Shown one piece after another: positions 31,761-59,565 of a stretch of DNA of 64,000 nucleotides. The translations under genes and the position numbers were made by a program. Below the pieces are notes generated by a model, which was not told where the DNA came from, ran no database searches, and saw only the letters and a program-made list of their open reading frames with translations. This stretch comes from Mobula hypostoma (lineage: Eukaryota), in NCBI RefSeq assembly GCF_963921235.1, contig NC_086118.1:28024001-28088000 (forward strand), written 5' to 3'. Position 1 is the stretch's first letter, and every line of letters begins with the position of its first letter.

Positions 31761-32409
31761 ATAGCCTCATTTTTGTCCTCTTAATTTCTTTTTACATACT
31801 CTCATAAAACTTCTATATTCCTCAAATGTCCCTTTTGATTGTAGATGCCTATACCTGCCATATGCTTCTTCTTTTTTCTGATCAAACCTTGTATTCCACT
31901 ACTTTTCAGAAAAAAAAATCAGCATATCATCAGGTTTTAAATTATGACGTGGAGGCTTCTGCATTCAGACTCCAGGATTTTAGCCATGGTTGCTAGCTGC
32001 TTTTTTTTCACTACATCTCACTTCTGCCTGTAGTTCAGCAGCCATGAATGTTGCTGCTCAGGCTAAGATGGTGAAATTTGCAATTATATGTTCTCTATCC
32101 ACTTCCCCGCTGGAGATAAGCATTCTTCCCAAGCCACAAGGGAAACATCTTTTGGAGACACTTGCAGAAGGAAAGTCATGTAAAAGAGACACTGAGATTA
32201 TGTAGAGGAGTGGTGATTTTACTGTTAAATTATTGCACATGATCAATTTAATATATTTTTGAAATATGAAACTCTATTCACTTACATTTTCATGACTAAA
32301 GTACAAGTAATTTTCAGACAATGCTGACTTAATGATACAAAAGTGGAATGGGTTTTATAAGATTCCTGTGACTTTAGCTGTTTATCTGTATTATCTGCAG
32401 GTGAATCAA

Positions 32410-32479
32410 ATGACAGAAATGGGGTTATGCTTGAACTTTTTTTATTTGATCATGTACCTGAGCATGCACTATGCAGAAC
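32410..32479 (+). CDS. B7-like gene 1: signal-peptide exon
   Basis: Acceptor ttatctgcAG at 32400; MTEMGLCLNFFYLIMYLSMHYAE; phase-1 donor AAC|GTAAGT. Confidence 0.85.
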
Positions 32480-32569
32480 GTAAGTACTGAAATGTTTTTC
32501 AATAAATAGCTCATTCAACATTGATTGTTAAACTTGTTTCTGAAGTTATTGGAAATTAATGATTTCTAG

Positions 32570-32896
32570 CATTTGTGAAGCTGAATTGTGTGGAGTCAGT
32601 AACAGGAATATTTAACGAAGACACCGTACTACCATGCAGTATGGAAGGAGCAGGGATGAAAATACTAACTCTAACAAAACTAAATGAAGATGGATCGAAT
32701 GGTAAAATTGTCTTTAAGTCTAACTCAAGTGCAAGTGACAGTGGAGTTCAGGGTCGAATTAAATTACGTCATCAAGATCCACCGGATGTGTCTCTGATAA
32801 TCCAGAAAATACAAGCATCTGATAACGGAAAATATCAATACCTTGTGGAAACGGATCATGGATATGACTATAAAATCATCAATTTGATATTTAGAG
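32570..32896 (+). CDS. B7-like gene 1: IgV exon (atypical V-set)
   Basis: PFVKLNCVESVTGIFNEDTVLPCSMEGAG…RIKLRHQDPPDVSLIIQKIQASDNGKYQYLVETDHGYDYKIINLIFR; AG/GT phase 1-1; 327 nt; V-set E-F motif SLxI…DxGxY. Confidence 0.92.
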
Positions 32897-33899
32897 GTGG
32901 GTAATATAATACTTTCTCTGCTTTTAATTTTCTTTATGAATATTGGTTACGTCTAATTGGTAATAAATTGCAGTTAATACTGTATCTCTCAAAGTGCCTT
33001 GATTTGTGAGTTAGTTTGACATATGCAATATTGATAGTTATATTTGTACAGGGAAGAATGACTGAATTTATGTCATCGTTACAAGTCATATCACTGCACC
33101 AAATTGTTTTGAATTCTACCAACTTGAGTGAAGCTCTTTTCCATCAAACACTGAATAAATGTGCATGAATAAAATAAGTGATTTTTAGTTTGTGGATTAA
33201 ATACATAATTTACATTTGAGAATATGGAAGTTTCTAATGAAGCAAGACATCAGAGATTCGTAAATTGTAGACCATTGTGGGTGACAAGAAAAAATACTTG
33301 AGTGAATAGTATATAAAGTACATAGGCTTTCTGACATTTGAAGAAGGCAAGAGATAGTAATATATTCGATTAGTCATGATAGCAATAAAGGAGCAAGCTA
33401 CAACACTTGTAATTTCTGCCCTAGTGCATTAATAATCTCCTAAGGTTATTGGGACATAAAAAGAAGATTTAGTACCTTTAATGATGTATTTGTATACAGT
33501 ATCTGCAATTGGCAGTAATGCATACAAAATACATTTGGCAAGAAATCATTTTACTGGAAGTATGTACTTTAGATCTTTGGTTTTGAGGCTCTATTAGTTG
33601 AAGATCCGCATCTTTTTTTCCTGGATTTAGTTATAGATCTCTTGCACTAAGTAACGGAGAACTCCTACCTCATATCTCACTATGTTCCAGCTTTGATCTG
33701 GCTATGCCCTAATAGTTTGATTAGTCAAATAGTTTCAGATTTGAATTACGCAGTGAGTTATATGAATATAAGCTGTTCTATAAAGAAGACTGGGAAATGG
33801 CATTCATAATGTTAATATGGGTGTTAGTGCTAATTCTATTAGACATTGTGCATCCAATGCTATGGTCACATGGCTAAAGATGTAAAGCATGTCTTTCAG

Positions 33900-34151
33900 C
33901 TCCATATACTGGGCCACACATCAGCAAAAAAGAAGAAAATGGCAGAACGTTTCTTGTGTGCACAACAGTTGGATATCCACTGGCACAACTTTATTGGAAG
34001 ACTGACAAAGAAACCAACTTGAATTATAGTGTTGACATCACGCGACTGGGTGTACTGTACAACATCACCAGCTGCATTCCAGTAGTTTATGACTGGTGCT
34101 CTGTAAACTATATTTGTTCTGTTTGCATTGAAAATGGTTGCATATCTAAAG
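33900..34151 (+). CDS. B7-like gene 1: IgC exon (Cys-rich)
   Basis: APYTGPHISKKEENGRTFLVCTTVGYPLAQLYWKTD…NITSCIPVVYDWCSVNYICSVCIENGCISK; B7/BTN-type CxxxGYPxxxxxW; phase 1-1; donor AAG|GTAAGT. Confidence 0.9.
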
Positions 34152-34569
34152 GTAAGTTTGAATCTTATTTATCATTAAATGCAAGCACTGCAACTTCTGA
34201 GCCTTTATTGTGAATTGGCTGTTTATAAAATACAAGGCCTCCATGTATGCTGTAACAATTTCAATCAATGATTCAAGGAAAAGAAACACATGTACTTATT
34301 CACTACTGACACTTAATCAACATTGCGACTTGGAGTACAGTATGTGGCAGTTGTCTTGAGCAAAGCAGGCACATCTGCACGCCAATGTGATAATGATGAA
34401 GCAATGTGCTGAAGAGAGGAAATAGAAGACCCTAATGGCTGTGACTAGAGCTGTGTAGACAATGTGGATATCAGGACAAGATCTGAAGCTGGATAGAGGA
34501 AGAAAGTTGGGAAGTTTGCAGCTGCTTAATGGAACTTGATAATCAGTTTGAACTAAATACATGATCAAG

Positions 34570-37500
34570 AATGTCAAAGATCATGAAGCTCCCTTGTGTG
34601 ATTCATTGTAATGGGGTTTTGAATCATACATCAAAATCATATTTATAGTGGGCAGAAATAGTGAACCCAACAATTATAACTCCCCTCAGTTCTGCGTTGT
34701 CACAAATTACCAAAATATGCACATTCAATGAGTGTATGTTTGTAGTCTTTACCTGCTGTAGCTCATCCACTTTAAGGTTTGCCATGTTGTACATTCAGAG
34801 ATGCTCTTCTGCACCCTACTGTTGTAACATAAGATTATTTGAGTTCCTGATGCCTTCCTGTCAGGATGAACCAACCTGTACTTCGGGACTTTCTGGACTT
34901 TCTCCTCTAACCGCTCTCATTGATAAGGGTTTTTCACCTACAAAACTGTCACTCAGTGGATGTGCTTTGTTTTTTGCACCGTCCTCTGTGAACTCTAGAG
35001 ACTGCTGTGCATGAAAATGCCAGCTCAGCAGTTTCAGAGATACTCCAACCACTACACCTGACACCAACAATCATTCCACAGTCAGGCATACAGCAGGTGT
35101 AGAGTTTCGAATGAAATGGCAACTGAGTGTAGATCAGCATGATCTACTGCATATAATTATATTTTCCATTCCTTATAACATGTGGAATAATTTTAATAGC
35201 ATTTTTCTTCTTATTTTGTAATCATATTTAAAATGTTTGCATTATTTCTGCTCCACCTGTGTTCCAGGGAACACTCTTCAGTTTAACGGTAAAATAGAAA
35301 CTACTGCAGTGAGCTGAACTAAGACCATTTCACCATGGCTGATCCATTTCCTTCTCAGCACTATTCTCCTGGCTTCTCCCCATAAGCTTTCACGCCCTGA
35401 CTAATGAAGAGCTTATCAACTTATGCCTTAAATACACCCAGTGATCTGGCTTCCACAGCCACCTATGGCAACAAATTGCCCAGATTCAACAACCATTCTA
35501 AATGGACATCCCACTATTCTGAGGCTGGGTCTCTGGTCATAGACTCACCACAATAGGAAGTATATACTCTACAGCCTCTCTATCTAGGCTTGTCAACATT
35601 CGATAGGTTTCAATGAGATCACCCCTGATTCTTCTAAATTCCAGTGAGTACAGGCAAGCAAACACTCCTCATAGGATAACCCTATCATTCCTGGAAACAT
35701 TCTCATGAACATCCTCTGAACCCTCCCCAATGTCAACACATTGATTCTCATATAAGGAGCCCAAAACTGCTCACAATTTTCCAAGTGAGGCCTCACCAGT
35801 GCCTTATAAAGACTCAGCATTACATCCTTGTTTTTATATTCTAGTCCCCTGGAAATGAATGCTAACATTACACTTGCCTTCCTCACCACAAACTTAACCT
35901 GCAAATTATTCTTTAGGGAATCCTGCATGAGGTCTCCCAAGTCCCTTTGCTCCTTGGATTTTTGAATTTTTCGCCTGTTTAGAAAATAGTCGGTGCTTTT
36001 ATTCCTTTTATCAAAAAGCATGACCATGCACTTCCTGACACTGTATTCTGATTACAATATCTTTGCCCTTTCTCCAGATCTGTCTAAGTCCTACTGCAGA
36101 CTCCCTGCTTCCTGAACACTACCTACCCCTCCACCTATCTTGCTATCATGTGCAAACTTGGCCAGTTTTGTGCTTTCTACCGAGCTCCCTAAATCCTTTC
36201 TTAAGGACTTCCTCTCTTTCCCTTCCTATGTTATTGGTGCCAATAGATACCAAGACTTCTGCCTGCTCACCTACCCTCTTTAGAATGTTGTGTATCTGAT
36301 CATTCCAGGTGTCCCTATCATCTCTATACTCCCGACTTGTGAGGACCTTTTTGAAAGCAGTGTTCTATGATTTAGTTCTCTTTAAATTATAATTACATTG
36401 AAACCCTCCAAAGCTGAAATTCTCTTCAAGTTGAATCGCTATTAATATGGTTCATGTTTCCTGTGCCTCAAAGAATCATATGCAATAAGTGTGGGCAAGT
36501 TGCAGCTGAGCATGAGCATATCTGGCTTGTCTTAAAGTTCCTATTCAGTGTAACCTATGTATCCTAAGACTAGCACACAGTTCACTTGGCCCAGCGCAGT
36601 TATCTCATAAATTGATATTCTACATAGTCAATTACAAAATTAAATATTAAGTTTACATTTTTGTGCTACAGAATGTAAATTCTACATTTTGAGAAAAGTT
36701 AATTATTCATTTTCCATTGCAGAATTGGATTGTCTAAAAGTTGAAGCAATTTCTGAGCAACCATTGGATGACAATAGAACACGTGTTGGTGTTCTTCTCT
36801 GCTTGGGGTTCTTAATGCTGCTGTGCACAGCAGCTTTTTACTGCAGAAAGCAATTTTCTAAAGGTAGAGTATTAATTCTGGTCAGTGAAAGGGAAGGATA
36901 TAAAACATCGAACACTACAGCACAGTACCATGATATTGTGTTCACCTTTCAGCACAGTCCCATGATATTGTGTTCACTTTTCAGCCTACCCCAAGATCAA
37001 TCTAACTCTTCCCTCCCACAGAGCCCTCTAATTTTCTTTCATGCAATGGACATCTAAGAGTCCCTTTCATTTTTCTAACGTATCTGCCTCTACCACTATC
37101 ACTGGCAGTGTGTTTGTTCCATACATTTACCACTTCGTGTGTAAATAAAACCTACCACCAACAGACAACCCTCTACAATTTCCTACAATCATTAAAATGT
37201 ATGCTGTCTCATATTAGCCATTGATGCCCTGGGAAAAAGGTGCGGGCTGTCTACTTGATCTACACCACTTTTCACCTTATACACCTCTATCAAGTTCAAA
37301 GTTCAAAGTAAATGTATTATCAAAGTACATATATGTCTCATGTACAACCTTGAGATCAATTTCTTCCGGGCATACAGAGTAAATCCAAGAAACACAATAG
37401 AATCATTGAAACATCATATCCAACAAGGTGGACAAACAACCAATATGCAAAAGACAAAAACTGTGCAAACAGAAATGAAATATATAAATACATAAATAAA

Positions 37501-38560
37501 GTTGAGAACAAGAGATGAAGAGTCTTTGAAAGTGACTCCATAGAATGTGGAACAGTTCAGTGATGGTGCAAGTGAAGCTGTAAGGAAATAGAGGTACTGC
37601 TGTGCTTTCGTTGTAATTGTATTTACCTGCTGGGTCAAGGACAGGACATCTGAAATGATAACACTGAGGAATTTAAAGTTGCTGACACTCATTCTCATGA
37701 ATAAAGTCATCTCTCTTTCTTCTTTGCTCCAAAGTGAAAAGTCTTAGCTTGCTCCACTTTTTCTTATAAGGTCTGCACTCTAGAATAGTCAACATCCTGG
37801 TAAGTCTACTCTGCACCCTCTCTAAAGCTTCCAATCCCCCAAATAATGAAGGCCAACACACTGTACACCTTAACCACCCTATCAACTTGCATGATAACTC
37901 TAAAGGATCTATGTATGTGCACCACAAGATCCCTCTGTTCCTCAACACTGTTAAAAATGCTGCCATTAGCGCTGTACCTTACCTTCAAGTTTGACCTTCC
38001 CAAGTGAATCACTTGACACTTTTCTGAACTGAATTCCATCTGCCACTTCTCAGTCCATCAGTCCAGCCCTATATTCTGTCAATGTCCCATTGTAATCTAC
38101 GACAACCTTCTACACTAACCACAGCACCACCAATCTTTGTGTAATCTGAAAACTTACTAACCCACCCTTCCATTTCCTCATCCAAGTCATCTATAAAAAT
38201 TACAAAGAATAGGGGTCCCATAACAGGTCCCTGGGAATTCCACTCGTCATCAATCTCCAGGCAGAAGACATTCCATCTACAACCACCATCTGACTTTTAT
38301 AGGGAAGCTAATTCAGAATCCATACAGGCAGGTTTTCCTAGATCACTTCTCTGCTTGCTTTTCTAAGTGAGCTTACCATGGGGAATCTTTTTTGGTGCCT
38401 TACTAAATCTATAAGTGCCAAATCTATCACTCCATCTTCACCAATTTGTTTTGTCACTTCCTCAGAAAAGTCACTCAGGCTCAAGAAGCACGACCTCCCC
38501 CTCACAAAGCCACACTGATTGTTCCAAGTCAGACTATGCTACTTCAAAGACTCCAAAACT
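34570..38560 (-). mobile_element. Intronic Rex1 (34570-35140, 37295-37690) and CR1 (35330-36300, 37700-38560) fragments
   Basis: CR1: LYKALVRPHLENCEQFWAPY, MEFSSEKCQVIHLGRSN; Rex1: VSNFKFLSVIISDVLSLTQQVNTITTKAQQYLYFL. The span encloses the TM exon, which is listed separately. Confidence 0.7.
36723..36863 (+). CDS. B7-like gene 1: stalk and transmembrane exon
   Basis: ELDCLKVEAISEQPLDDNRTR-VGVLLCLGFLMLLCTAAFYC-RKQFSK; acceptor ttttccattgcAG; phase 1-1. Confidence 0.87.
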
Positions 38561-39316
38561 GGTGTTACATAGCAGTTTTTGAAGGTTCTGTTCTCCATTC
38601 CATTCAATAAAGACCCATTCACACTTTTACCAATCCATCTTTCTCTACTCCAACTTTAGCTAGGGTAAGACTGCAGCACCCACCACACTTAACTGAGTGA
38701 CCATTTTTCATAAAAGAGTCTAAAGAGCATCAATCATAAGCAATATAAAGTAAAAGTGGCCATTGCTGACCTCAGTCTTTTTCTCGCTCAATACCATCAC
38801 ATATTCACTACAGAAAATAAGCAATTTAACAGCAAAACATCTCAACATGGACAGAATTATAATGAAATCTGACACTGATCTTAAGAAGGAGATAATATCC
38901 CATGCAAAGAAATAACTGGTCCAAAGTGGTGGATATTGAGAGGTACTTGAAGGAGAGAAGGAGAGAGGATTAAGAGGTGGAAAATTAAAATCTGCAATAA
39001 ATGTTTACTGGAAGCCAAGTGTGGAGGAAGCAAAAAGTTTCCAGCAAGTTGCAGGGTCTTAAAATGAGAGAAACACAGGTTCAGGAAACTACTTAAATGC
39101 ATGGATAACAAATGTAAGGCATTGCTTAAAAATGAACTATTCAGATCAGCAAGGTGTAATGACTGAATGGATTTGGTCCATTTAACATGAAAACTTTAAA
39201 ACGTAGAACATAGGGGACAAATATGCCATTTGGCCTTGAGTCACCATTTAACGTGATCATGGATGATCATTCACTTCAGTATTCCTGCCTTCCCTTTTCT
39301 CTTGATCCTTCTAAGC

Positions 39317-39396
39317 CAGGGGTTCCCAACCTGGAGTCCACAACCTCCTTGGTTAATGGTAGGTGTCCCTGGCATAAAAAGAGTTGGGAACCCCTG
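39317..39396. mobile_element. 80-bp hAT-type MITE
   Basis: 14-bp TIRs CAGGGGTTCCCAAC / GTTGGGAACCCCTG. Confidence 0.75.
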
Positions 39397-40239
39397 CTCG
39401 AAACATCTAGCTACCCTCTTGAATATATTTAATGTTTTGGCCTCTACTCCCTACTGTGTGTATAATTTTTCCGATCTCGGTATGGTATACACCATACCTT
39501 GAGCCATGACCCCTTCTTCTGCACTCCTCAGCCTCTATTTAGTCCTCTTAGATTTTTTGTGTGTGTGGCTTTTAGGAAATCCACCTTCATTCTTCTAAAT
39601 TAATGTCGATATTTGTCTAACTGACCCAATCTCTCTGCATAGAATAGTCATTCCATCTCAGGGATCTCTCTGTTAAACACTTGTTCACTCCACCCATGAC
39701 AAGCAGATTCTTTCTCACATAAGGAGACCAAAAGTCCAGTTGGGCTTTCACCAAGATGACAACATTGCTTTTGCAATGAAAATCATCTAATATGAATACT
39801 TGCTTGCTTCAACTATCAACGTACAAAAGCACCCACTTGAAACACATTTCCTTTTCCCAATTTGTCATTGCTTAGATAATAATCTGCCTTTCAGTTTTCA
39901 GAAACAAAACAGATACCTTCACATTGATTCACATCAAAATGCATTAGCCATGCATTTGCCCACTGAGCACATTTTGAAGTTAAAAAATGAAGAGAAGTTC
40001 TGCAGCAAACTAAGTCTGAAATGGTTCATGGTTAAGTATTAAATCACCTGAGGCTGTTTCAAGAAACATCTTTTCAGATTCAATGTAATGCTATTTTTAC
40101 TTGAAATATTAATGTTGTCATTTTCTCAAAAGCATACACCAGGAAACAATCTGCATCAGCGCTGGTATATTTTGTGGGTATGTAACTTTTAAGAATATCT
40201 TTACAATTTCTAAAAGGAAGGGTTATCTTACCTTTAATT

Positions 40240-41830
40240 AGAACATAGAACAGTATAGTGTGGGATCAGGCACTTTGACCTACAATGGCCATAATGAAAA
40301 CAAAGAATTTCCATCTGCCTGTACATGGTCTATAACCCTCCAGTTCCTGTCTGTTTATGTGACTGTATAAATGCCTCTTGAACATTGCCATTCTGTTTTT
40401 TCCAAGTTCCTGCCACACACTGTGTAAAAAAAAAGCCTTGTAAATCTCCTTTAAATTTTTCCGTCTCACCTTAAAGCTATGCCGTTTCGTATTTGATATT
40501 TCCACCTGGAGCAAGATTCTATCAACTATGTCTGTGCCTCTCATAATGTACGATGCTCCTATCTGGTCACTCCTCAGCCTCCTGTGCTCAGGCAAAACAA
40601 TCCAAGTTTGTCCAACGTCTCCTTACAGTGAATACTCTTTAATTCAGGAAATATACTAGCAGACCTTCTTCAAAGCCCTCACGTCCTTTCTATAATACAG
40701 CAACATGAACTGCTAACTGTACTCCAAATGTGGCCTTACCAAAGTTTAATACAACTGCAATATGACTTCCCAATGTTTATACTCAACACCCCAAAAGCTG
40801 AAAGCATGTATGCCAAATCCCTTCCTTACCACCTTGACTTGTGTTGCAGCTTTCAATGAGCTATTGACTTCTTCCTCAGTATCCCTAAGTACAATAATGC
40901 TCCTCACTTCCTGCTATTTACGGAACAAATTCCTTGTGCATTTGACCTCCCAAGGTACAACACCTCACATGTATTCAGATTAAACTCCATCTGCAATTTC
41001 TCTGCTCGTATTTCCAATTGGTGTATATCCTACTGATTCCTTCCGCACTATTCACAACTCCCCCAGTTTTTGCATTGTTTACAAACTCAGCCACTTACTT
41101 CCATCCAAATCATTTATATAAATCACAAGCAACAGAGGTCCCAGCTTTGACCCTTGTGGAACGTCACTGGCCACAGACCTCCAGCCAGATTAACACCCCT
41201 GCGTAATTATACTCTGTCTTTTATGGCCAAGCCAATTTTGCATCCAACCTATCAAGTCTCCATGGATCTGTTGGGCCTTAGTAGTCTCGATTAACCTACC
41301 ACAAGTAACCTTATCCACAGCTTTAATACAGCATTTACTGCCTTGCCATTATCAATCACCTCAAAAGGCACAATCAAGTTTGTGATATATGTCCTCCTCC
41401 AAAGGAAGGAATGATGGAGTAGACTCGATGTGCCAGTTGGCCTAATTCTGCTTCTGTGCCTTATGGTCTTTGCTTTTCCAGATACGAGTAGATCCTGTCC
41501 ATAACAATTCTCTCCAATAATTTTGTGTAAGGCTCACAGGCCTGTAATTTGCTGGTTTGTCTCAAAAATAGAGGAACAGCATTGACTATTCTCCATTCCC
41601 CTGGGACCTGTCAATATACAAAGATATCTGTCAAGGCCCCAGCGATCTCCTGCCTTGCCTCTCTCGGTAACCTGGGATAGATCACATTAAGCTCTGGGGA
41701 TTTACTCAGCATAATACTCTTCAGCAGCCCCAAGTTCTCCTGCTGTTTAGTATCAACATGATCTAGAATATCAGCATAACACACTCAGATCTCACGATCC
41801 TTCGTGTACTTATCTTTGAATGCAAAATAT
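40240..41830 (-). mobile_element. CR1 fragments, decayed
   Basis: EHRRLRSDQIGASYIMRGTDIVDR…RHSFKVR; CR1 tail near 40240. Confidence 0.65.
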
Positions 41831-41894
41831 TTGTTTCCTCTGAGGTTCCTTGAATTCCATCCTTCAACTGACGAGTTATTTTTTTCTCCAACAG

Positions 41895-41911
41895 ATGGTG
41901 AAGAAAATTGA
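41895..41911 (+). CDS. B7-like gene 1: probable terminal coding exon (DGEEN*)
   Basis: Strong acceptor gttatttttttctccaacAG; phase 1; followed by AT-rich sequence with several AATAAA (~42093-42303). Confidence 0.5.
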
Positions 41912-42416
41912 ATATGTATATCAAGTTAATTCTCAAAAAAAGAACCAGTTTCTGTCATCAATCTACTCCTGTCAATCAACATAATTATTCATGTTAATTA
42001 GCAAAATCACTCCTGTCAATATATTTTCACTAGATTCCTGTGTTGATAACTCATAGTTTAATCAGCTAATCATGTTGTTCTTTCTGCATCCAAATAAATG
42101 GACTGAAATCTGAACTGAGAGATATCAAAAGAAAAAATTAAGAGAATTTTCCGAGAAGCAGGCAGGATGAAGCCTGACTTTCTGAAGGTTATGATCAAGG
42201 CACAGAACAGCTGAACTCAATAAGAAAAATAAATCCTTTCTGTTTGATTACTTAACTTCGTGGAAATGTAATAAATCTTTAGTAATCGACTTTTAAAATA
42301 AATATACTCCAGATTTTAGACAGTATTCAGAATGATTTTATTGTAATGGCAAGTTAATCAATTTTTCAGTCAGAAAATTAATGTGAAAGTTATTTCCTAA
42401 TTCCAAAACCATGTTC

Positions 42417-47062: not shown

Positions 47063-47094
47063 AACCATGTGAGTATCCAATGTTATATTGGTGG

Positions 47095-48178: not shown

Positions 48179-48399
48179 AATCTTGTATGTTGATTGTTGA
48201 TATTGATCAACTGCTCTCGTTGTAGTAACTTAAAACAAAATTAAAAGCTATTTTTTTTGGTTTTTGAGAGATTCTCCCACCAGCCCCCTCCCTGTATGTT
48301 TGCTAGAAGCGAACATAAAGCCTGCAAAGTCTACAGCTTCGTTTGTTTGTTTGTGGCTCACTTAACCACAAAACAGGTTTCCTTGCCAGTGCAATCCAA

Positions 48400-48936
48400 A
48401 CCAACGCTCAGAATGCGGAAGTGATTATTTTGTGCTCGTTATGAATGCAAATATTTGCGATGTCAGACCACAATATTAATTAACGTTCACGAAGAAAACT
48501 AAAATAAAAATTGGAAGACGGTCTTTAGACAATGTCCCTGGAATAAATGCCGGAGCAGTGCAATAAGGAGAAAGTCCGGCTGGGGACAGTATATTTCTTA
48601 CAAGAAAGGGTAGGGTTTTCTGAAATTACAGTCCCGGGTAATTCCCGCTTTAGTTTCGGTTTTCGCAGCAGGCATTGACCTTCATTTCGTAAGACGCTTC
48701 TCCGAGCGGGCTGTTGGTGATTAGACTGCGGGTTACCTGCAAGTTTAACAGCCGTACAACTTAACAAAGTTGCATGTCAGGCATAAATCTTCGGTAGTTA
48801 TTTTTCGAATTGAAACTCGGTATCGCCACTGAAACAGAAAGCAAGAAAATTGAAAGTCCAGGAAACAGAGTGTCCCCAGTCCGCCGAATCGAACGCGAGT
48901 TTTGGGGGCTCTCGGGAGACAGCGTTCAGCGCGTTG
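48400..48936 (+). promoter_or_regulatory. CpG-rich promoter and non-coding exon 1 of B7-like gene 2 with IRF/NF-kB-like motifs
   Basis: IRF-E AGTTTCGGTTTTC at 48652-48664; GAATTGAAACT 48807-48817; GAAACAGAAAGC 48831-48842; GAAAATTGAAAGT 48845-48857; kB-like GGGTAATTCCC 48636-48646; donor TTG|GTAAGC after 48936. Confidence 0.7.
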
Positions 48937-49315
48937 GTAAGCTTGGCTCCGCGATTTCTCCACAGCTCATCGCAGACTCTTGCAGCTTTCTCAAGTGGAT
49001 CGAAATGGCAAATCCGGTTGCCCTCTGTAGATTCCTCCACTTGCCTGTTGCTTTAGCTCTTCTGATTTTCTGTGTTTGCATTAACACTTTGATCCAGGCA
49101 GCGAATGTCCGCAGTCGCGAAGAGTCTGCTGAATGTAGAGCAAACTAGAAAACCAGCAGGTTACCAGGTTTTCTGATTGATCAACAATATGTAGTTGATG
49201 CAATTTACCTTTTTAATGACCTACTTGGAATTTACATTATATGAAATTCCTGACAAATATTCGATTTCTGATCTTTAAACTTTTTTTTCTATATTGTGTT
49301 TCAATCGGCAGGCAA

Positions 49316-49397
49316 ATGAAGGGAATTCTGGAAATGGATTTAAACCTACAAATATATTTTTATTTTGTGCTGTTTGCAAACCTTTACTCTGCACAAG
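49316..49397 (+). CDS. B7-like gene 2: signal-peptide exon
   Basis: Acceptor ggcAG at 49311; MKGILEMDLNLQIYFYFVLFANLYSAQ; phase-1 donor AAG|GTAAGT; resembles the gene 1 leader (EMxLxL). Confidence 0.85.
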
Positions 49398-49481
49398 GTA
49401 AGTAGTAAATCGTTTTTCGGTCACTAGCTCATTCAACGTGATGATAGTAATGGAAGATGATGGGATGTATTTTTTTTGCAG

Positions 49482-49805
49482 AGTTCATGACTTTGAAGTG
49501 CGAGGAGACGGTGACGGGAATATTTGAGGAGGACACGATATTGCCATGCAACCTGACAATAACAAAGCCAAGTAAAATCACAATTGAATTGAGCAAAGAT
49601 GATGGAAATTCTAGAATTGTTTTTAAGTTTGATAGAAATCATAATGCCAGAGAAGCTCAGAATCGAATTAAATTACTTCGTTCGGATCTACAAAATGTAT
49701 CGCTGCTACTTCAAAAAACAAAACTTTCAGATAGTGGGAAATATACTTACTATATGGAAACAGATGTGGGATATAAGCAAGTTAACATCGTTTTAGTGGT
49801 TAAAG
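49482..49805 (+). CDS. B7-like gene 2: IgV exon (atypical V-set)
   Basis: EFMTLKCEETVTGIFEEDTILPCNLT…RIKLLRSDLQNVSLLLQKTKLSDSGKYTYYMETDVGYKQVNIVLVVK; phase 1-1; donor AAG|GTGAGT; about 42% identical to gene 1 V by manual alignment. Confidence 0.93.
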
Positions 49806-50693
49806 GTGAGTAACAGTGTGCTTTCCCTGTTTTTTCATTTCAAAACCTGGTTAATTCTAACTGACTTCAAATGCAGTTTTACTTACCCAAACACCTTTGT
49901 TTTGCTTTTATTATTTCAAATATAGACTTCATTTATGAAAAAAAGATAGAAAGTTACAGTAGGTAAATAAACACTATGAGAATTTTATCTGTAAAACAAA
50001 GAATACTTTTGCATTTATATAACAGGTTTCAAATCTCCAGACTGTCCCCAATCATATCACTTTCATTGCAACCAAGCCCCACTTATATTAGTAAACTCAC
50101 CAGGTAACTGGTAGGGTGAAAGTATCCACTCATGCTGGATGACTGTACTACTGAGTAGATTACCCACTTTTGGTGTTTTTGCATCAACCTATGCTGGCAA
50201 GAATCCCTTGGCATTAATGCTGAGAATGAACTGCTATCTCTCCTGAGTAGTGACGTACCCCACAGGCAGCGGTTGCACCAAGAGTATCCTCCAGGAATCT
50301 GTACCCAGGGCTTTGCAGCTTAAAGATGGTGTAAGCATAGCAGTACCCATTCAAAGGAATGGAAAATGTCTCCTGGAACTATTTTCCTTAAATAGTTATA
50401 TAGCATAGATAAGAGTTTGTTTTTCAATGCAAAAATATTTACAGCTCGATGAATGTTCATGAAAGTGAAAGCCTCTGACGCAGAGCTCAGGGTCTCACTG
50501 GTTGCTGCATCTATTCAGTGGGTCCTGCTGATTACCTGAGCTGCGATAGCAATTGGGTGGCGTTCAGCCATTATTAAGTGTTAAGAGTTTTGATTTTCAG
50601 GGGCCACGCTGGAATACCATGACAGGGATGGCAGATTTTGGAATAATGAAAGATTGGCCAATATTATCAAATAATACAATGCTCTCTTTTTAG

Positions 50694-50978
50694 CTCCCTA
50701 CAGTTTGCCAAAACTGGCCTTAGTTAATTTGACAGAAACGACCAAGGTGGTCAGTTGTGAAACAACTGGATATCCTTCTGCTCAGATTCATTGGACCGTC
50801 AATGGGAAAAACCTCACATCTAGGTCAAAAAACAAAGAAAGTGAAACTGCTCAAGGACTGATCTCTATTACCAGCACACTTCCAATTATAAAGTCAGAAA
50901 CTGACCAGGAGCATATCTACACCTGTGCTGTATGGAATGAGGCAGAGCATAAATATGAAGCCAAGAACAGTATCTCAA
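50694..50978 (+). CDS. B7-like gene 2: IgC exon
   Basis: APYSLPKLALVNLTETTKVVSCETTGYPSAQIHWTVNG…ITSTLPI…IYTCAVWNEAEHKYEAKNSIS; canonical C-W-C; phase 1-1; donor CAA|GTATGT. Confidence 0.92.
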
Positions 50979-51019
50979 GTATGTTCATAATCTTCTTTTT
51001 CATGATTAGGAAAATGATT

Positions 51020-52150
51020 GTTTAACTAATTGCTACAATATTTCTGCTTCTCAATGCTGCCAACTTGGTATATTTGGATTTCCAGAAGAACTTTGAGTGG
51101 GTGTAACAAAACAAATTTCAGCATATGTCACAAGGTGCAATATACTGGCCAAGTCTGAACATTGGGATATGGACAAAAAAATTAGAAATAGGCTGGTGAT
51201 TTTCAATCTGGGAGGCATGACAAGTGGGGTGCTGCAGTGATCAGTCTTAGCTAGAAAAAACTAGAAGAAGTTAATGGTTCAGGTAGCATTTGTAAGAAAA
51301 ATGGCCAGTTGATACCTTGGGTTTAGCCCCTCCATCTGGACTGAAAGAGGAGAGATATAAACCATTAGAGGGTGAAGAGAAGGGCTGGAACAAGAGCTAG
51401 CAGGTGATAGGTGAATTCAGGTAAGACTGGGTTAGTCAGATGTGGAATCAAAGGGGGAAGGTACAGAGAGAAGATGGGAGTAGTGGGGGAGGGAAACAAT
51501 TGAATATATGAACATAAAAAATAGAAACATGATGATGCCATCTGGCCTGTCAAACCTGCTCCACCATTAAATAGTGATAAATTGAAAGCTGTTGGTGTTC
51601 AGAGGAATGTACACATCATTTGACACAAATCACTGGAATTTCATATCCATTTGATGCAATAAATAGGAAGCCAGATTATTTATTAGGTTTTAATTGCACA
51701 ATGATTTGACTTCAAGAATAGGGCCATCTTGCTCCAATTATTTAGGGCCCTGGAGAGCCAACATTTGGAATACTATTTGCCTATGGATTTGCAGTGGAGA
51801 GACTGGAGCAATGGGTAACTAGGTTAATTCCCAGAATAGGGGTTTTGACCTCTGCTCCCTTAAATTTAAAAGAATCAGTGTTGATCTCATTGGAAGGTAC
51901 AAAATTATCACAGTTCTTCCCTGGCTGAAGTGTCTGGACACAGCATCAGTTTCAAAATTCAGGATTGTCCTTTCGTGACCCAGATGAGAAGAAGGTTTTT
52001 CATCAGAAGCTGGTCAATCTACCCATGGAGACTGCAGAGACTGAATCGCCAAATATTTCCGTGATTGAGATAAATAGAAGTTTGGATATTTAGAGATATG
52101 GGGAAGTGTTTGAAAATATAGCTGAGAAAAAAAGCACAATCTCATTGAAT
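51020..52150 (+). mobile_element. Decayed CR1 fragments plus an old Penelope remnant
   Basis: CR1 RT-region similarity ('gggaggcatgacaagtggggtgctgcag', 'ccaacatttggaatact'). Confidence 0.5.
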
Positions 52151-52391
52151 GATAGGGAAGTTGTTATATTTTAGTTGTTCCAATCATTCTTTTTCTTACA
52201 TTTGTTATGCTCCAGAGGCTATATTTAGCTCTCTAGGGTGTTTTTTTCCGGGGTGGTTATGGGATTATACAGTTTTGCTTGGAGATCAACATGACTGATT
52301 TTTAAAAATTGTGGAGTGTATAAGCATATGACGTCAGTGTTCTTATAAAGATTGATGATGAAATTTACAGCTCTTCTGTTGTTTTTTTTAG

Positions 52392-52538
52392 TTTCAAATG
52401 TATATCAGCTAAATAATAAAAAACACACTGAAGAAAAAAGGAGAAAAGCCCTCACAGCAGTAGGTATCGTTATTGGAGGTCTTGCAGTTGGAATACTCAT
52501 CCTGGGTCTTCTGAAATTCAGGAGAAGGCACCATCCAG
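52392..52538 (+). CDS. B7-like gene 2: stalk and transmembrane exon
   Basis: ISNVYQLNNKKHTEEKRRK-ALTAVGIVIGGLAVGILILGLL-KFRRRHHP; phase 1-1. Confidence 0.88.
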
Positions 52539-52852
52539 GTACACTATTTCAGCAAATGATTTTAATTCCAAGTAAAACTTCTGAATCCTTGTAACTCAAA
52601 GTATTAATTATTGGTGTAAAATTATGCATAGATAACCAATGATCAATATAAAATATAATTTCATAATCTGTGAAAGATTTAAAACTTTAATGGTTGCCAA
52701 ATTGTTATGATCTACAGCTGGCTGGTTGAAATCATTAGCAGGGCTGTATTTGTGCATTTGCCTTCCAAAAACAAGCAGATTTGAAATCCTGTCTACAGTG
52801 GATGTTTACGGTGATAGGTAGATAAAGTATCAATATACACCATAATAAATTA

Positions 52853-53836
52853 CACTGGACAATAAAGATTTTGCTTCCTGAATACCTTTAGGTGTATCTT
52901 ATGAATTCTGGGCTACTGACCATGAAAATCATCATGAAATTTCCCTATCATGTACCATTTTGAAAAATAAACTTACGTTTAGTATTTCAATTCATAATTC
53001 AAGTCACTTAAAATGTTACCTACAACGTAAGCTGGAAAGTTTCCTATCTTGTCCAGGCGTGCTTAGGCGGCGCGGCTGCCGCATGACACGACAGGTTTTA
53101 GTAATAATTATTGAGTTCAGGACTGTAAGGATGGAATTTGCTATCACCAGGCACAAATATTTCTATGAAGGATTTTGATATTTGAGACAGATGCTTCCCA
53201 GACTAACTGATGCCAAGATTAAGGAAAGCATTTTTGTTGGTCCACAAATCAAACAGGTCATCAATGACAGGCAGTTTGAAGAATTTCTAGTGGGATTGGA
53301 GAAAATCACATGGAAGGCATTCAAGGAAGTTGTTGAAATTTTTCTCAGCATCAGCAGAGCACCAAACTACATGCAGCTGGTTGAAAGCATGCTTCAAGCA
53401 TGTAAAACCACAAAGTCCAACATGTCACTAAAGATTCATTGCCTGCCTTCCCATTTAGACTTCTTCCCTGCAAATCTTGGTGCTGTTAGTGATGAGCATG
53501 GTGAAAGGTTTCACCATGGAGAAAAGATACCAGACCAACTGGAATCTATCAATACTGGCGAACTGTTGTGGACACTTAAGCGAGAAGCTTCAGACACTGA
53601 GTACAAATGAAAATCGTTAACAAAATATTTTCAACTTAGTTGAACTATTGGAAAGCATCAGCACCATTATGCAATTAAACACATTATATTCAATAAAAGT
53701 TAATTTGTTGTTTCTCCAAATTCCTACGTGGTAAAAGTAGCCTGAAGTTATATTTGTGTTCATCTTCAAGCAGTCTACCATAAACAAAAAAAAAATTCTG
53801 AGGAAGCAACACTTCTGAAAAATTTGTTGTCCAGTG
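52853..53836 (+). mobile_element. Chapaev3-like (CMC) DNA transposon deletion derivative
   Basis: TIRs CACTGGACAATAAA / TTTGTTGTCCAGTG; ORF 53182-53610 KIKESIFVGPQIK…NMSLKIHCLPSHLDFFPANLGAVSDEHGERFH. Confidence 0.75.
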
Positions 53837-54099
53837 TTTTATAATCGATTATTCCAAATCCTGGCCTCAGAATGTGCAGAACTTTTCACCAAACTCCCAC
53901 TTGCACCTAAAGACTCACCAGGTGAGTCACCCTGGAAAGTTCTGATTTACCTTCTGCAGGGTCTGATTCTGTTATCAAACTACCACCATTTACAGTGCAC
54001 CAAGTATTGGTGTAGTATTAGGTAAAGCAAATGGTGCTGGAGAGAGCATTCCATAAAAAAGAACAGAAGCTTTTAAAAACATAATTTATGTGTGAAATT

Positions 54100-54990
54100 A
54101 TGGAGCCATTTGTCCCACACTACCAGGCTCAGGAACAATTATTACCCTTGAACCATCAAACTCCTGAGCAGTGTGGATATCTTCACACACCTCGACACTG
54201 AACTGATTCCACAACTCACTTTAGACAACTCTACAACTCATCTTCTTAATATTATTTACTACATTCTTTTTGCATTTGCAAAGTTTGCCTTCTTTTGAAC
54301 ATTGGTTGTTTGACCAGCTTTCTGTGTAGTTTTTACTGATTCCATTGTATTTCTTTGTGTCTACTGTGAATATCCACAGGAAAAATGAATCTCATGGTAG
54401 TAGTACATATGGTGATATGTACGTACTTTAATAATAAATTGTTAACTTTTGAACTTTGAAGTGCATTGAGTAAGTCTTTGTGTGTGTTTTTAGCAGTTAG
54501 TTGAGTGACTTGCCAGTGTATAGGATAGTTGAGATAGCAACGTAGGAATTTTCTCAGATTTTAAAAAAGCCAGACCAATTAAGAGTAGTGTGTTTTCTTT
54601 GTTAAAGGACATGAATAAGCAATTGGTTTGTTTTCTACAATATTCTAAAGAGAATGAATCTTAAGCAAACACACAGAACGCTGGAAGAACTCAGCAAGTC
54701 AGGCAGCATATGTGGAAAAGAGTAAACAGTTGACATTTTGGGCTGAGACCATTCTTTAGGACTGTGAAAGAAGGGGGTAAGATGCCAGAAAAAAATGTGG
54801 GAGGTGGGGGAGGTGAAAGAGGCTCGCTGGAAAGTGATAGGTGAAGCGAGGTGGGTTGGAAAGGTCAAGGGCTGGAGAAGAAAGAATCTGATAGAGGAAA
54901 ATGGACCACATGGAGAAAGCGGAGGAGGAATGGAGCCAGGATAACAATAGGCAGGTGGGAAGAAGTGAAAGAACAGGATGGGGAATAGAT
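54100..54990. mobile_element. Rex1 3' fragment (54100-54420 +) and old Penelope terminal repeat (54655-54990 -)
   Basis: 'accaggctcaggaacaattattacccttgaaccatcaaactcctg'; 'agtcaggcagcatatgtgg…cagttgacattttgggctgagacc'. Confidence 0.6.
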
Positions 54991-55421
54991 AGAGTTAAAT
55001 CTTTATGCTTACAGTTACTGGCAGCAGGCAATTGATTAAACTGCGCTCAACTACCCATATTGTGAGGCTAGGATTTGAATTAATTTCACCTGGATTATTT
55101 ATAACTTGAGACAATTAAACTGATCGATTGGTAACATAATTTCCTATTGAAAAGGAGTGACATATTATTTGTAGCCTGGTCCCAGTCTAAAAATTGGATC
55201 AATTTTGCATTCCATTATTGTTGGAAATACCTGAATATTACAGAAAATGTAAGAATTCATTATTACTGTCATTGTTACTACTCTTAGTATACGTGATTAG
55301 GACTTTAAGAACAATAAGGAAAATAATTTGCATTATTTTTACATCAAGAAATATTAATTTACTTAAAATTAATGTGACATAAATAATAATAATTCACTTT
55401 CTTTTGTTTTTAGTTCAACAG

Positions 55422-55448
55422 TCCAAGGAAGAATCAGAACATCAAGTG
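55422..55448 (+). CDS. B7-like gene 2: candidate 27-nt cytoplasmic mini-exon (VQGRIRTSS)
   Basis: Acceptor cttttgtttttagttcaacAG, donor GTG|GTAGGT, phase 1-1; an alternative AG at 55413 would give a phase-0 end. Confidence 0.45.
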
Positions 55449-56018
55449 GTAGGTTTGATTTCAAACATTGACTTATTTTTAGCCCCACACATCACGATTT
55501 TCAAAGTTTATTTGTTCTTGTTTAATAGCTTAAGTAATTTCTTATTCAGCTTTGAAGACTGCCCCGCTAACTTCAAACTTACATGGAGGAACCATCATTT
55601 TGTGACGTGATGTCTGATCTGCCTGATGTTCTGTTGTGCAACTGTGAAACTTCAACATCCTTCACAAAGAACTAAGACATTCCTCTGTAATAACTTGAAA
55701 GCAGGAATTGTGCTTTCAAAAATCTCAGCTCTTGGGTAAAATAACAATTCCAGTTTTAACTTTGGCACTTTGTTGAACTCTTCACCATTGCTTTTATCTG
55801 AAGTTAATGACTTCACATATTGATAAATCTCATCAGTGAGATCAAACTTAAGTGTCAAGGAATGACCCTGTTTTATACCTGAAATACTAAGTCTGTGTAC
55901 GAAATCACCATAAGGCAATGAAAAGAGAATAAGCTCTTAAGCTTAGTTGCACTTTGAAAGTTTGCTTCCTGTTGAATGAATCCATTAAGCTATTTTTCCG
56001 CTGAGCTGTACTTCTCAG

Positions 56019-56039
56019 GAACTAAAAAAGTGAAATGTG
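56019..56039 (+). CDS. B7-like gene 2: candidate 21-nt cytoplasmic mini-exon (GTKKVKC)
   Basis: Acceptor ctgtacttctcAG, donor TG|GTATGT, phase 1-1. Confidence 0.5.
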
Positions 56040-56089
56040 GTATGTAGTCAGCTTCAGTCGAAAACAGAAGCAGAAGGAGCATTATGTAA

Positions 56090-56455
56090 GTGGAATACTA
56101 CATGTATTTGCCACTTGTAATGTATGTATGGAGAAGGAAATCTCTGATTTTAAATCTCCGCTGCCTTGCGGCCATACCCACCCGTGGGAAAGGCTTCGGG
56201 AGTAAACCCAGAGGAAGAAATCCGGAACCAGGGTCCCTAAGGCAGTTTAATAATGTTTGCAACTTCACTCTGGCAACCTCTGCTACAACACTGGTGACAA
56301 GCTGTATTGGCACTTGCCCTTCCCTTGGACTACATCAGTGACATGGAGAGGGGGAACACGCTGCGTGGGCAACAGCCGGTTCTTCAAATCTTCCTGCCCA
56401 GGCTTGCACCCTGGAGAGGACACAGACCAGCAGAGGTGCAAACCCACGGCTGTCT
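56090..56455 (+). mobile_element. SINE/RTE-related fragment
   Basis: Body shared with the 57291 SINE ('caagctgtat…cccttggac…gcccaggc'). Confidence 0.5.
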
Positions 56456-56987
56456 ATTATTATAACAAATGTATGTGTTGTAATTTTTTGTGCTTTGTCT
56501 TTTGAGTCAAATGCAGTGAGCACATGTGCAATATTATAGATTATAGTTTGATCAGTTGTCTTTTCTCTGTTTTAAGGATTAGAATATCAAAATTAACTTC
56601 TATAAAATTTCTGTTTATTTTATGTATTTCTACTTTAATTTGTTTTATGTACATAGCCCAGTTATAAAGCTCATTTGATATTTTATACATATTTTATACT
56701 AATTATTTTGTAAATCTTATATTGTTCTTTTCCTCCTAAAAGTACTTAGATACATTAACCATTTCTATTATCTTACTCTCCTACACTATTGCTTATGTGA
56801 GCCATGCCAATGAATGTGAGCTGGCTGTACAAATGTAAGTTTTAAAATCAAGCCCTAACATTTGGTGACAGCAACCTTAAAATATATCAGGTCCTCCAGT
56901 GGATCCTCATAAAAATACTATTCAGTTCAAGTGAGTAATTCAAACAAAATGAAAATTGAGTGTCATTTGCTTTATGTTTTATTACAG

Positions 56988-56995
56988 AAGAGTGA
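56988..56995 (+). CDS. B7-like gene 2: candidate short terminal exon (EE*)
   Basis: Acceptor tttatgttttattacAG; phase 1; AATAAA at 57063-57068. Confidence 0.35.
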
Positions 56996-57290
56996 AAAGG
57001 TGTGGGATTTAAAAAAAATTGTTTTGTGAAGTGATTAGAAACGTTGCTGACTTAATTTGGGAAATAAACATAACCTTTCACTTCTTTTTCTCCGTGGTGT
57101 GATTCCTTTGCCAACAGATTGAACCACATGATCTTCTGTGAGTCCCAGCCCAAAGGGTTTCAGCCCATTCATCTGTGGACCCATGATGTAAAGTGGTAGT
57201 TGTATAATCAATAGAATTCAGTTCTCAAGCATCCACTGTGGGATTTGTATTCAGTGACTCTAGATTAATAATCTTGGCTTTTGCATTATT

Positions 57291-57575
57291 AGCCCGGTGG
57301 CTAAGTGGTTAAGGCATCGGTCTAGTGATCTGAAGGTCATTAGTTTGAGCCTCAGCTGAGGCAGCGTGTTGTGTCCTTGAGCAAGGCACTTAACCACATA
57401 TTGCTCTGCGACAACACCGGTGCCAAGCTGTATGGGTCCTAGTGGCCCTCCCTTGGACAACTTCGGTGATGTGGAAAGGGGAGACTTGCAGCATGGGAAA
57501 CTGCCAGTCTTCCATACAACCTTGCCCAGGCCTCAGTCAACATCGAAAATCGATGGACAACGGAAAAAGAAAATT
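57291..57575 (+). mobile_element. tRNA-derived SINE
   Basis: A box TGGCTAAGTGG, decayed B box GTTTGAGCC, 'gtgtccttgagcaaggcacttaac' body, A-rich end. Confidence 0.8.
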
Positions 57576-58296
57576 AGCCCGGAATCATCACTGACTAACT
57601 GGATTCTGACAACTCACTCTCATTCCTCAATCACACTTTATTTAATTGTGCACAAGAAGAACAGTTCAGCTCTTGTCATCGAACTGTTCTGAAGTTGGAA
57701 TGAGGAAATGCCATTTTTATACACAGATTGACTCACTGGCAGATATTGATTCAATAGAAACTTAGTGTACCTCTGAATTCTACCATTTGCGTATTTAGGT
57801 ACCAATAATAATATATATTTCAGGTATTAATAACCAATTAAATCCATGTGCTAAAGGCCAATAATACTTGAGATATTAGTAAAATAACTGTGCAATATTC
57901 AGTGCGTCCTGTGTTTGCATCTTTGTCTCGTTTTGGTAATCTTGGTTCCCCAGCTTGAACAAAAAATCTGTGCAAACGAGAGTTAGACTTTCAAGGGACA
58001 TGTTCAGTCTGGGTGACTGCAGTTTGTGTCAGTTGATCAGATTAATTCTTACCTTTCTGAACTTCCACATTCTGTTCTATCAGTGCACCATTTTAACCCT
58101 TGCCTTGCTGCAATTTCCACACTGAACTATCCACAATGGGAGTTGTATTCAGTGACTCCAGATTAATAATCCAGGCTTTTGGATTACTCCTCTAGTGATA
58201 CAACCATATTATATTCCATTACTATTGATTACCTTTCTGATGATACACTTCACAGCAGAAAAGTGACATTCTTTCCAAAAAAATCTTAAGTTTGCG

Positions 58297-58610
58297 CCGA
58301 AGGTAGAAGGGGATGAGTTATACAGCTCTCATTACATGCACGTGCAGTTCAACTCTTTCAGTGATTATGCAGAAAGTTTGAAGTTAATAATTCATCTCCT
58401 GCTACCTTAGGCCATGAACTTATCAATCACCCTGTTGTGGTCCACATTCTGGAGGTCCAAGATGCTGACTTCTACAAAGAAGGGATCCATACGCTCCACA
58501 CCGCTGGACTAAGTGTGTGAATATAGTAGGGGACAATGTTGAAGAATAAATGTGCTAGGTTTTCTAAAATTGACTCCTTCTATCTTAGGCCATGAACTTA
58601 TCAATCACTC
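58297..58610 (+). mobile_element. mariner-derived non-autonomous remnant
   Basis: HRWTKCVNIVGDNVEE* (mariner transposase C-terminus); TIR-like 'ttaggccatgaacttatcaatcac' twice. Confidence 0.65.
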
Positions 58611-58617
58611 TGTGTGT

Positions 58618-58651
<34 letters not shown>
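58611..58651. repeat. (TG)n microsatellite
   Basis: Read directly from the sequence. Confidence 0.95.
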
Positions 58652-58655
<4 letters not shown>

Positions 58656-59452
58656 GTATGATTTTGCAATATTGACAGCGATTCAGACTTACTGTACAAA
58701 AACAGGCATTAATCGCCACTGCGGAGATCAGGGCTTCAGCTATTCAGACTTATAACAATGTTTTTGATGAGAAAGCCATTTGTATTATTTCCCTGAAGTG
58801 ACACACACAAGTGCTGGAGGAACTCAAGCAGGTCATCAGGACTAATGAAGGATCTTGGCTTGAAGCTGTTATTTCCTTCCACAGATGCTGCCTAACCTGC
58901 TGAGTTCCTTCAGTATTCTGTGCGTGTTGCTCAAGATTTCCAGATGGCTGTTGATTTTGCAATTCAGAAATTGGAGATTTTGAAAGATTTCCAGTATCTG
59001 CAGAACCTCTTTGTATCTGTAATATTTCTCTGTTTCTTGAGAACATAATGGCAGGTGGGAGTGTGAGCACATCCTCCCCCGAATCCTTGTTCAGCCACTC
59101 TCAGAAACAACCTACTCTCCATTAATGCAAGTGATCACTATTCACTGGACAGAGCAACAAAATGCTTATTCTGGCAAGAATATTGCAAACCTCAATCTCT
59201 AAATATAAAAGAAATCCCGGTAGAGCTCAAATCAACCACCTTTGTCCACCTGCAGCTGCAAGATAAAGGAAAATATTACCACAAAGATATACAACAGATA
59301 CAGAAACTGCAATGTCAACAATGCCACATCAAGACAATTAGTAAAGATAAATATAGAACAACTTTAAAGATAGAAGGAAGTAGAAGAGGGAGTGAGTGAG
59401 AAGACACAATATTTATTTGTTTTTGATTATTGTATTTGATTTGCATTGTTAG

Positions 59453-59565
59453 CTGGAGATAATTCCTCTTTGGAAGGCAGAAGAGACCCACTGCTCAGAG
59501 TAGTGATAATTAGCGATAACCCTTTCAGAAGAGAGACTACAGTAGTTCAGCAAACTAGTCTTTGA
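59453..59565 (+). CDS. B7-like gene 2: candidate alternative long terminal exon ending QQTSL*
   Basis: T-rich acceptor …tttgatttgcattgttAG; phase-1 open frame AGDNSSLEGRRDPLLRVVIISDNPFRRETTVVQQTSL*. Confidence 0.35.

Follow-up and report, generated by a model that had tools for sequence, protein, structure and literature searches.

Does a ray encode B7-type immune ligands that correspond to no named member of the family? The question is raised by two neighbouring genes on the same strand, g1 (from position 32410) and g2 (from position 49316), in a 64,000-nucleotide stretch of the Mobula hypostoma genome (NC_086118.1, positions 28,024,001 to 28,088,000), here called the window, with all positions counted from its first letter. 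An earlier, sequence-only reading had described the two as a diverged tandem pair of V-C-transmembrane (TM) ligand genes of the B7/butyrophilin (BTN) type that could be assigned to no named member. We rebuilt both gene models from the sequence and compared them with RNA contigs, related proteins, predicted structures and published surveys. Judged by their sequences, g1 and g2 are most likely new members of the B7 family that act as ligands. On balance we favour placing them in an unnamed B7 subfamily that is multi-copy in sharks, rays and skates, in which they would be ray and skate paralogues encoding surface ligands and whose nearest relative would be CD276.

Architecture and transcription of g1 and g2

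In both rebuilt models a leader is followed by a V domain, a C domain, a TM segment and a short tail, the common architecture that had been proposed. Leader, V, C and TM occupy exons of their own in phase 1, and each product has a distal V-set domain, a proximal C-set domain and a single TM segment, as expected of B7 and BTN proteins. Pfam finds a V-set domain in both V exons and C2-set_2/C1-set in the C exon of g2, with only a weak C2-set_3 match in that of g1. The two proteins are 43.9% identical in their V domains and 26.5% in their C domains, close to the 42% and 25% first estimated by hand. Each carries the four NxS/T sequons, the uncharged TM segment and the short tail reported earlier, and immunoreceptor tyrosine-based inhibitory or activation motifs (ITIM/ITAM) are indeed absent from both tails. 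The leader-V intron measures 90 nt in g1 and 84 nt in g2, the two ends of the range given before. The statement that all introns are in phase 1 holds for the leader/V, V/C, C/TM and TM/tail junctions, all of them GT..AG, but fails for the last g2 junction, which alone is in phase 0. Pfam domains, exon phases and the nearest neighbours in sequence and fold (below) all agree with a diverged tandem pair of B7-type V-C-TM ligand genes.

The C domain of g1 is 73-77% identical to that of its stingray orthologues despite its poor Pfam score. In an AlphaFold2 (AF2) model of the Hemitrygon g1 orthologue P0010, this domain forms a beta-sandwich with a predicted local distance difference test (pLDDT) score of 82-92. 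Because the odd domain is conserved in stingrays and is confidently modelled as a beta-sandwich, we reject a pseudogene reading of g1. AF2 models of P0010 and of P0122, a Mobula birostris protein that matches g2 with 97% identity (98% over the V exon), both contain two beta-sandwich domains and a TM helix. The P0122 model has a mean pLDDT of 80.5, with most of the ectodomain at 81-97.

Spliced transcripts, on which the sequence-only reading had made its proposal depend, exist for g2. RNA contigs join 49397 to 49482, 49805 to 50694 and 50978 to 52392 exactly as predicted, all across GT..AG introns, and contigs of 1825 and 1441 nt span the V, C and TM exons. The four runs that hold g2 come from two closely related organisms and are tagged as RNA by guess only; they behave as RNA, because their contigs skip introns. 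Depth is 40-525 over g2 exons versus 0-15 in most intron bins, and the letters that follow 52538 in the RNA contigs match uniquely at 55414. For g1, a share of 0.76 of the sampled words of 32410-32896 occurs in four RNA-type runs of the same study. Transcripts without the 90-nt intron would give just this value, which we take as indirect support for splicing of g1.

The products of g1 and g2 would thus be glycosylated type I membrane proteins with one TM helix and a tail free of signalling motifs, and because of these properties we consider them ligands rather than receptors. The V domain would be presented on a C-domain stalk and would engage an IgV-type receptor on another cell, possibly a chondrichthyan CD28-family member without an assigned ligand. 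The cell that carries the receptor would then be the one that signals, and fast evolution would be expected of the loops that face the receptor. Between the window and a Mobula hypostoma protein, g2 differs at 24 of 108 V-domain positions and at 2 of 95 C-domain positions (Fisher's exact p=1e-5), and in this Mobula comparison (P0121/P0122 set) the V domain is 78% and the C domain 98% identical. Of the 25 alignment columns that differ, 16 belong to strand F, the FG loop, the BC loop or the C'-D stretch, and the changes cluster in BC, in C'-D and at the end of F/FG loop. Such a V-biased pattern fits a receptor-binding face that may be co-evolving or under diversifying pressure; it could also stem from exchange between paralogues or from a comparison of genes that are not orthologous.

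The V-domain core and its distribution among fishes

The V domains of g1 and g2 lack the canonical core of B-strand Cys, C-strand Trp and F-strand Cys, so that they depart from the common Ig pattern and not from any trait that defines B7 proteins. In g1, Cys30 lies in the A strand and Cys46 in the B strand, 'YQY' stands at the F-strand Cys site and there is no core Trp; g2 has Cys34, Cys50 and 'YTY', and its core Trp is missing as well. All 25 aligned members of the family have the A-strand and B-strand Cys (Cys42 and Cys58) and a Tyr or Phe at the F-strand Cys site, and the core Trp site is Leu in 23, that is, in every one of the 23 elasmobranch sequences. In the P0122 model, DSSP assigns residues 38-42 to strand A and a stretch of residues 58-62 to strand B; Cys42 is the last residue of the former and Cys58 the first of the latter. 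Strands A and B usually pair antiparallel. If 38-42 and 58-62 pair in this way, Cys42 and Cys58 would face each other, and from the model we infer a cross-strand A-B disulfide in place of the canonical B-F bond.

Searched exhaustively with phmmer, a set of 1.84 billion representatives yielded 112 proteins that match the g2 V domain at E<=1e-3. Relatives are found in rays and skates (Hypanus, Hemitrygon, Mobula, Pristis, Rhinoraja and Amblyraja) and in sharks (Scyliorhinus, Carcharodon, Heterodontus, Chiloscyllium, Rhincodon, Stegostoma, Mustelus and Pristiophorus), and those of full length are V-C-TM proteins of 285-300 aa. There are 2-6 paralogues per species, and in each species that yielded more than one copy the copies share a single chromosome-scale contig. 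Their automatic names clash, ranging over PD-L1-like, PD-L2-like, PD-L2, CD276 antigen, CD276-like, BTN1A1-like, hemicentin-like and uncharacterized. These clashing names, together with a published elasmobranch PD-L1 that is a different protein (below), agree with the earlier view that the genes cannot be assigned, one to one, to any named B7 member. Our literature search found no paper describing the family, shark B7-H3 or CD80/86, or a non-canonical B7 V domain, in keeping with the proposal that the system is undescribed. Names such as 'PD-L2-like' and 'CD276 antigen' on genes of this family are unsafe as a basis for cross-species checkpoint inference.

A quick maximum-likelihood tree with Shimodaira-Hasegawa-like approximate likelihood ratio test (SH-aLRT) support recovers two ray/skate clades, one of g1 (98) and one of g2 (96), besides a clade of sharks (96). 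The shark clade has duplications of its own, and the split between g1 and g2 is limited to rays and skates. Since skates carry both types, the g1/g2 duplication predates the divergence of skates and stingrays. The order of the three elasmobranch groups has SH-aLRT support under 80, and the tree is silent on whether sharks ever had a g1/g2 pair. As the family shows, an Ig V domain can lose its hallmark disulfide and Trp yet stay conserved over the deepest shark, ray and skate splits.

Domain content varies in some members. Skate forms of the g1 lineage without a C domain are V-TM or V-V-TM proteins (P0028 of Amblyraja, P0002 of Rhinoraja), and some g2-type models of Hemitrygon (P0113/P0114) match the C exon twice, giving V-C-C.

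The family had been thought specific to cartilaginous fish, and this part of the sequence-only reading goes too far. The same search with the g2 V domain finds relatives in sturgeon and paddlefish ('CD276 antigen-like'), eel, Hoplias, Umbra and Silurus, with the A-strand Cys, an 'APY' junction and GGYP..IHWF. The sturgeon, paddlefish and teleost proteins (P0109, P0142, P0003, P0007, P0102 and P0110) have in common the A-strand and B-strand Cys, the motif 'NVSLL.Q.T..SD.G.Y', a 'TAPYS.P' junction and the GGYP..IHWF C domain, and the TM segment of the sturgeon relative is very similar to that of the elasmobranch family ('ITAVFIVVGALASGILIL'). The F-strand Cys is gone in sturgeon, Hoplias and Silurus too and kept in eel and Umbra. 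Because the eel and Umbra relatives hold both A-strand and F-strand Cys, the sequences suggest that the A-strand Cys came first and that the F-strand Cys was lost later.

These bony-fish proteins also differ from the elasmobranch family. Identity is 20-30%, the core Trp survives in the sturgeon protein, which also carries an extra Cys pair, and annotation presents the teleost copies as long arrays of several units; the eel and Hoplias relatives are multi-unit proteins, and that of Silurus is V-TM. In the tree, which has long branches and is rooted on HHLA2-like sequences only, the sturgeon and teleost group lies outside the elasmobranch clade. Sturgeon P0109 and a mixed profile, each used as query in word-indexed searches, matched nothing outside Acipenseriformes and elasmobranchs. 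The bony-fish relatives are equally undescribed, so they offer no function to borrow.

In Acipenser oxyrinchus (L001:1-14035), the relative lies 7.5 kb downstream of a gene of the JUPITER (JPT/HN1) family on the same strand, and one NCBI model (P0143) fuses the sturgeon JUPITER-family gene with the B7-type relative. The ray window contains no JPT-like exon. Among the loci of relatives viewed with 10-kb flanks, that of sturgeon alone revealed a neighbouring gene; those of Umbra, Hoplias, Mobula hypostoma, S. canicula and Chiloscyllium gave either an empty flank or no DNA.

Named B7 families and candidate receptors

Both profile searches and predicted fold indicate B7-H3/CD276 as the closest named relative. 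A profile of the 25 family members, searched against all PDB sequences, ranks CD276 first (84 bits, E=8e-23, mouse 2Ig B7-H3), followed by PD-L1 (79 bits), BTN1A1 (70) and PD-L2 (65), and the lead of CD276 is wider with a profile built from the bony-fish relatives (75 bits versus 54, 42 and 42). The P0122 model, compared by Foldseek, has CD276 as its first match in AFDB clusters, in Swiss-Prot (E=6e-19) and in the PDB, where E is 1.6e-15 at an rmsd of 3.4 Å and 24% identity. ICOSL and B7-H6 also occur among the profile and fold matches, in which CD276, PD-L1 and BTNs rank high. Single exons searched against the PDB are less specific: the V exon of g2 (V2) has a weak match (CD276, E=0.08), and its C exon (C2) matches generic Ig constant domains. 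The butyrophilins (BTN1A1, BTN2A, BTN3A and BTNL) share the V-C ectodomain fold (TM score by hit about 0.7), whereas the family has no B30.2/SPRY tail, a much shorter cytoplasmic part and a non-canonical V core.

Could g1 and g2 then be the elasmobranch orthologues or co-orthologues of B7-H3/CD276 themselves, duplicated in tandem and strongly diverged in the V domain? CD276 is the top match of both profiles in the PDB and of the P0122 model in all three Foldseek libraries. The family shares with it the type I layout of leader, V, C, TM and short tail, an 'AAPYS.P' V-C junction, a C domain with GYP..W and QGLF, and the lack of a known receptor. Human B7-H3 aligns closely with the family over the 'VKAPYSLP' junction and over the 'GYP..W ... 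QGLF..TS.L' C domain, and a 2026 survey finds CD276 in all gnathostomes (PMC13262535). We nevertheless regard this explanation as unlikely. Identity to CD276 is only 19-24% across the comparisons, never above 24%, whereas CD276 is reported to surpass every other member of its B7 cluster in conservation, and by far (PMC13262535). High conservation across gnathostomes is not what we see in the family, which is multi-copy and has a fast-evolving V domain; that V domain, unlike the one of CD276, has an extra A-strand Cys and neither the F-strand Cys nor the core Trp. No canonical CD276 V domain appears among the 112 V-domain matches, yet sturgeon and teleost proteins with the A-strand Cys do. These bony-fish relatives probably coexist with a canonical B7-H3, which is reported for teleosts (a cyprinid CD276 is among the fold matches, from a species not shown to have both); in that case the group would be a paralogue.

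A second explanation, to which we give less weight still, is that g1 and g2 are the elasmobranch counterparts of CD80/CD86, diverged past recognition and serving as ligands of the CD28/CTLA4-like receptor trio of chondrichthyans. The bony-fish relatives carry the motifs 'C[NS][AT]SGGYP' and 'SSKL.F', which we take to resemble the human CD80 C domain. CD80 is among the fold and profile matches (Foldseek E=1.6e-15) but ranks below CD276 and PD-L1, far below them by profile (46 bits versus 84 and 79; 42 versus 75 with the bony-fish profile). An independently evolved receptor cluster of two or three genes fits ligands duplicated within one lineage, and CD80/86 are poorly conserved across gnathostomes (PMC13262535).

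It is very improbable that the genes encode non-immune Ig adhesion molecules of the CD200, nectin or IgLON kind, with a B7 likeness that reflects generic V-C similarity. Features from the ESM atlas rank 'OX-2 membrane glycoprotein-like' clusters first, and nectins, IgLONs and DSCAM occur in the HMM and fold lists. The ESM-atlas ranking, however, comes without an alignment or E-value and is contradicted by the profile and fold searches, in which nectins, IgLONs and DSCAM have lower scores than CD276, PD-L1 and BTN. The family is of the B7/BTN type in its APY junction, its GYP..W C domain and its exon phases, and so are its top-ranked folds.

Identity with PD-L1 and PD-L2, suggested by the NCBI names 'programmed cell death 1 ligand 1-like/2-like', the shared architecture, an 'R.xLL' D-strand motif, a tandem layout that recalls mammalian CD274-PDCD1LG2 and a PD-L1 HMM score near that of CD276, is scarcely credible, and we reject it, since the elasmobranch PD-L1 listed by Kondo et al. 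2025 for catshark, nurse shark and thorny skate (PMC12151841) is a different protein that retains the canonical Cys, Trp and Cys (compared by eye, XP_038660173 of catshark and XP_032874294 of thorny skate have C..W..C and other loops), and the PD-L1/PD-L2 duplication is placed in tetrapods (PMC12151841), whereas that of g1 and g2 is limited to the ray/skate lineage and sharks duplicated independently.

Several points weigh against the unnamed subfamily that we favour. The genes may possibly be highly diverged orthologues of CD276 or CD80/86, and the 64-kb window holds no other gene and thus no flanking gene for synteny. The g1 model stops at a tail exon placed by homology, and the support for its transcription is indirect, coming from a k-mer share. 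The link to bony fish is drawn from identities of 20-30%, shared motifs and an HHLA2-rooted tree, and the A-B disulfide from strand register.

If g1 and g2 belong to such a subfamily, candidate receptors can be named. The CD28 receptor family of jawed vertebrates has been extended to nine members, several of which are present in sharks and rays and absent in humans, and Quiniou et al. 2024 describe chondrichthyan members without an assigned ligand, namely the CD28/CTLA4-like trio, CD28HL1, CD28HL2 and CD28X (PMC11599192). The trio evolved independently in chondrichthyans as a cluster of two or three genes, and CD28HL1 is recorded from skate, sharks, sterlet, pike, trout and catfish (PMC11599192). 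The overlap between these taxa and those of the present family is suggestive. A speculative extension, which we hold with low confidence, is that the family forms the ligand set for CD28HL1, CD28X or the CD28/CTLA4-like trio, an axis of early jawed vertebrates that would be marked by an intra-sheet A-B disulfide, kept in elasmobranchs, sturgeons and some teleosts, and lost in tetrapods. The family provides a concrete, expressed, elasmobranch-wide B7-type set of proteins, distinct from PD-L1, as a candidate partner for orphan receptors of the CD28 family.

Gene models and surroundings in the window

The exons of both genes are listed below with the evidence for each.

Table 1. Coding exons of g1 and g2 (positions in the window).
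Feature	Position	Strand	Evidence
g1 exon 1, start codon and leader, phase-1 end	32410..32479	+	ATG; GTAAGT donor; leader matched by Hemitrygon/Hypanus orthologues P0010/P0012
g1 exon 2, V domain	32570..32896	+	Pfam V-set E=1.8e-6; 72% identity to P0010
g1 exon 3, Cys-rich C domain (CTTVGYPLAQLYW; six Cys)	33900..34151	+	Pfam C2-set_3, weak, E=0.002
g1 exon 4, stalk, uncharged TM segment, start of tail	36723..36863	+	AG/GT sites, phase 1; 77% identity to P0010 residues 213-260
g1 exon 5, cytoplasmic tail piece (AYTRKQSASALVYFV)	40133..40177	+	P0010/P0138 tail homology and AG/GT sites only
g2 exon 1, start codon and leader	49316..49397	+	Joint 49397/49482 in RNA contigs, 4 runs
g2 exon 2, V domain	49482..49805	+	Pfam V-set E=1.1e-7; joint 49805/50694 in 3 runs
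g2 exon 3, C domain (CETTGYPSAQIHW ... YTC)	50694..50978	+	Pfam C2-set_2 E=7e-11; joint 50978/52392 in 4 runs
g2 exon 4, stalk, uncharged TM segment, RRRHH stop-transfer	52392..52538	+	Covered by RNA contigs
g2 exon 5, tail (VQQSKEESEHQV)	55414..55448	+	Sole exact match of the RNA loose end; P0122 C-terminus
g2 last coding exon start, Leu and TGA, then 3'UTR	55550..55555	+	Reproduces the '...QVL' end of P0122

The g2 product has 292 residues. Two candidate sites for its stop (AG, a Leu codon and a stop) lie in 55449-60000; the one at 55550 was picked for its pyrimidine tract, which the rival at 56662 does not have. With this choice the coding sequence ends at 55555. The gene had earlier been drawn out to 59565, and beyond a 3'UTR we found nothing to tie 55556-59565 to g2.

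At 42043-42135 the window is homologous to the last coding exon of a Hemitrygon g1 isoform (X1), but contains an in-frame stop and has no AG at the acceptor position that the Hemitrygon protein implies. Because of these two differences, the g1 tail probably differs between rays.

A tblastn search of the window with all family proteins found g1 and g2 only. Repeats in intron 4 of g2 (52850-53850 and 54650-55050) are covered by many divergent RNA contigs, at depths of thousands in each of the four runs, and are probably expressed transposable elements. A 142-aa open reading frame (ORF) in the same intron (53182-53610) has no Pfam match. Debris of Penelope-like retroelements at 3856-4383 (-), 7641-7931 (+) and 8807-10317 (-) fills much of the 32 kb upstream of g1, and its ORFs match reverse transcriptase (RVT_1) at E=9e-6 and GIY-YIG at E=4e-4 and 2e-3, none of which reaches the Pfam cut-offs.

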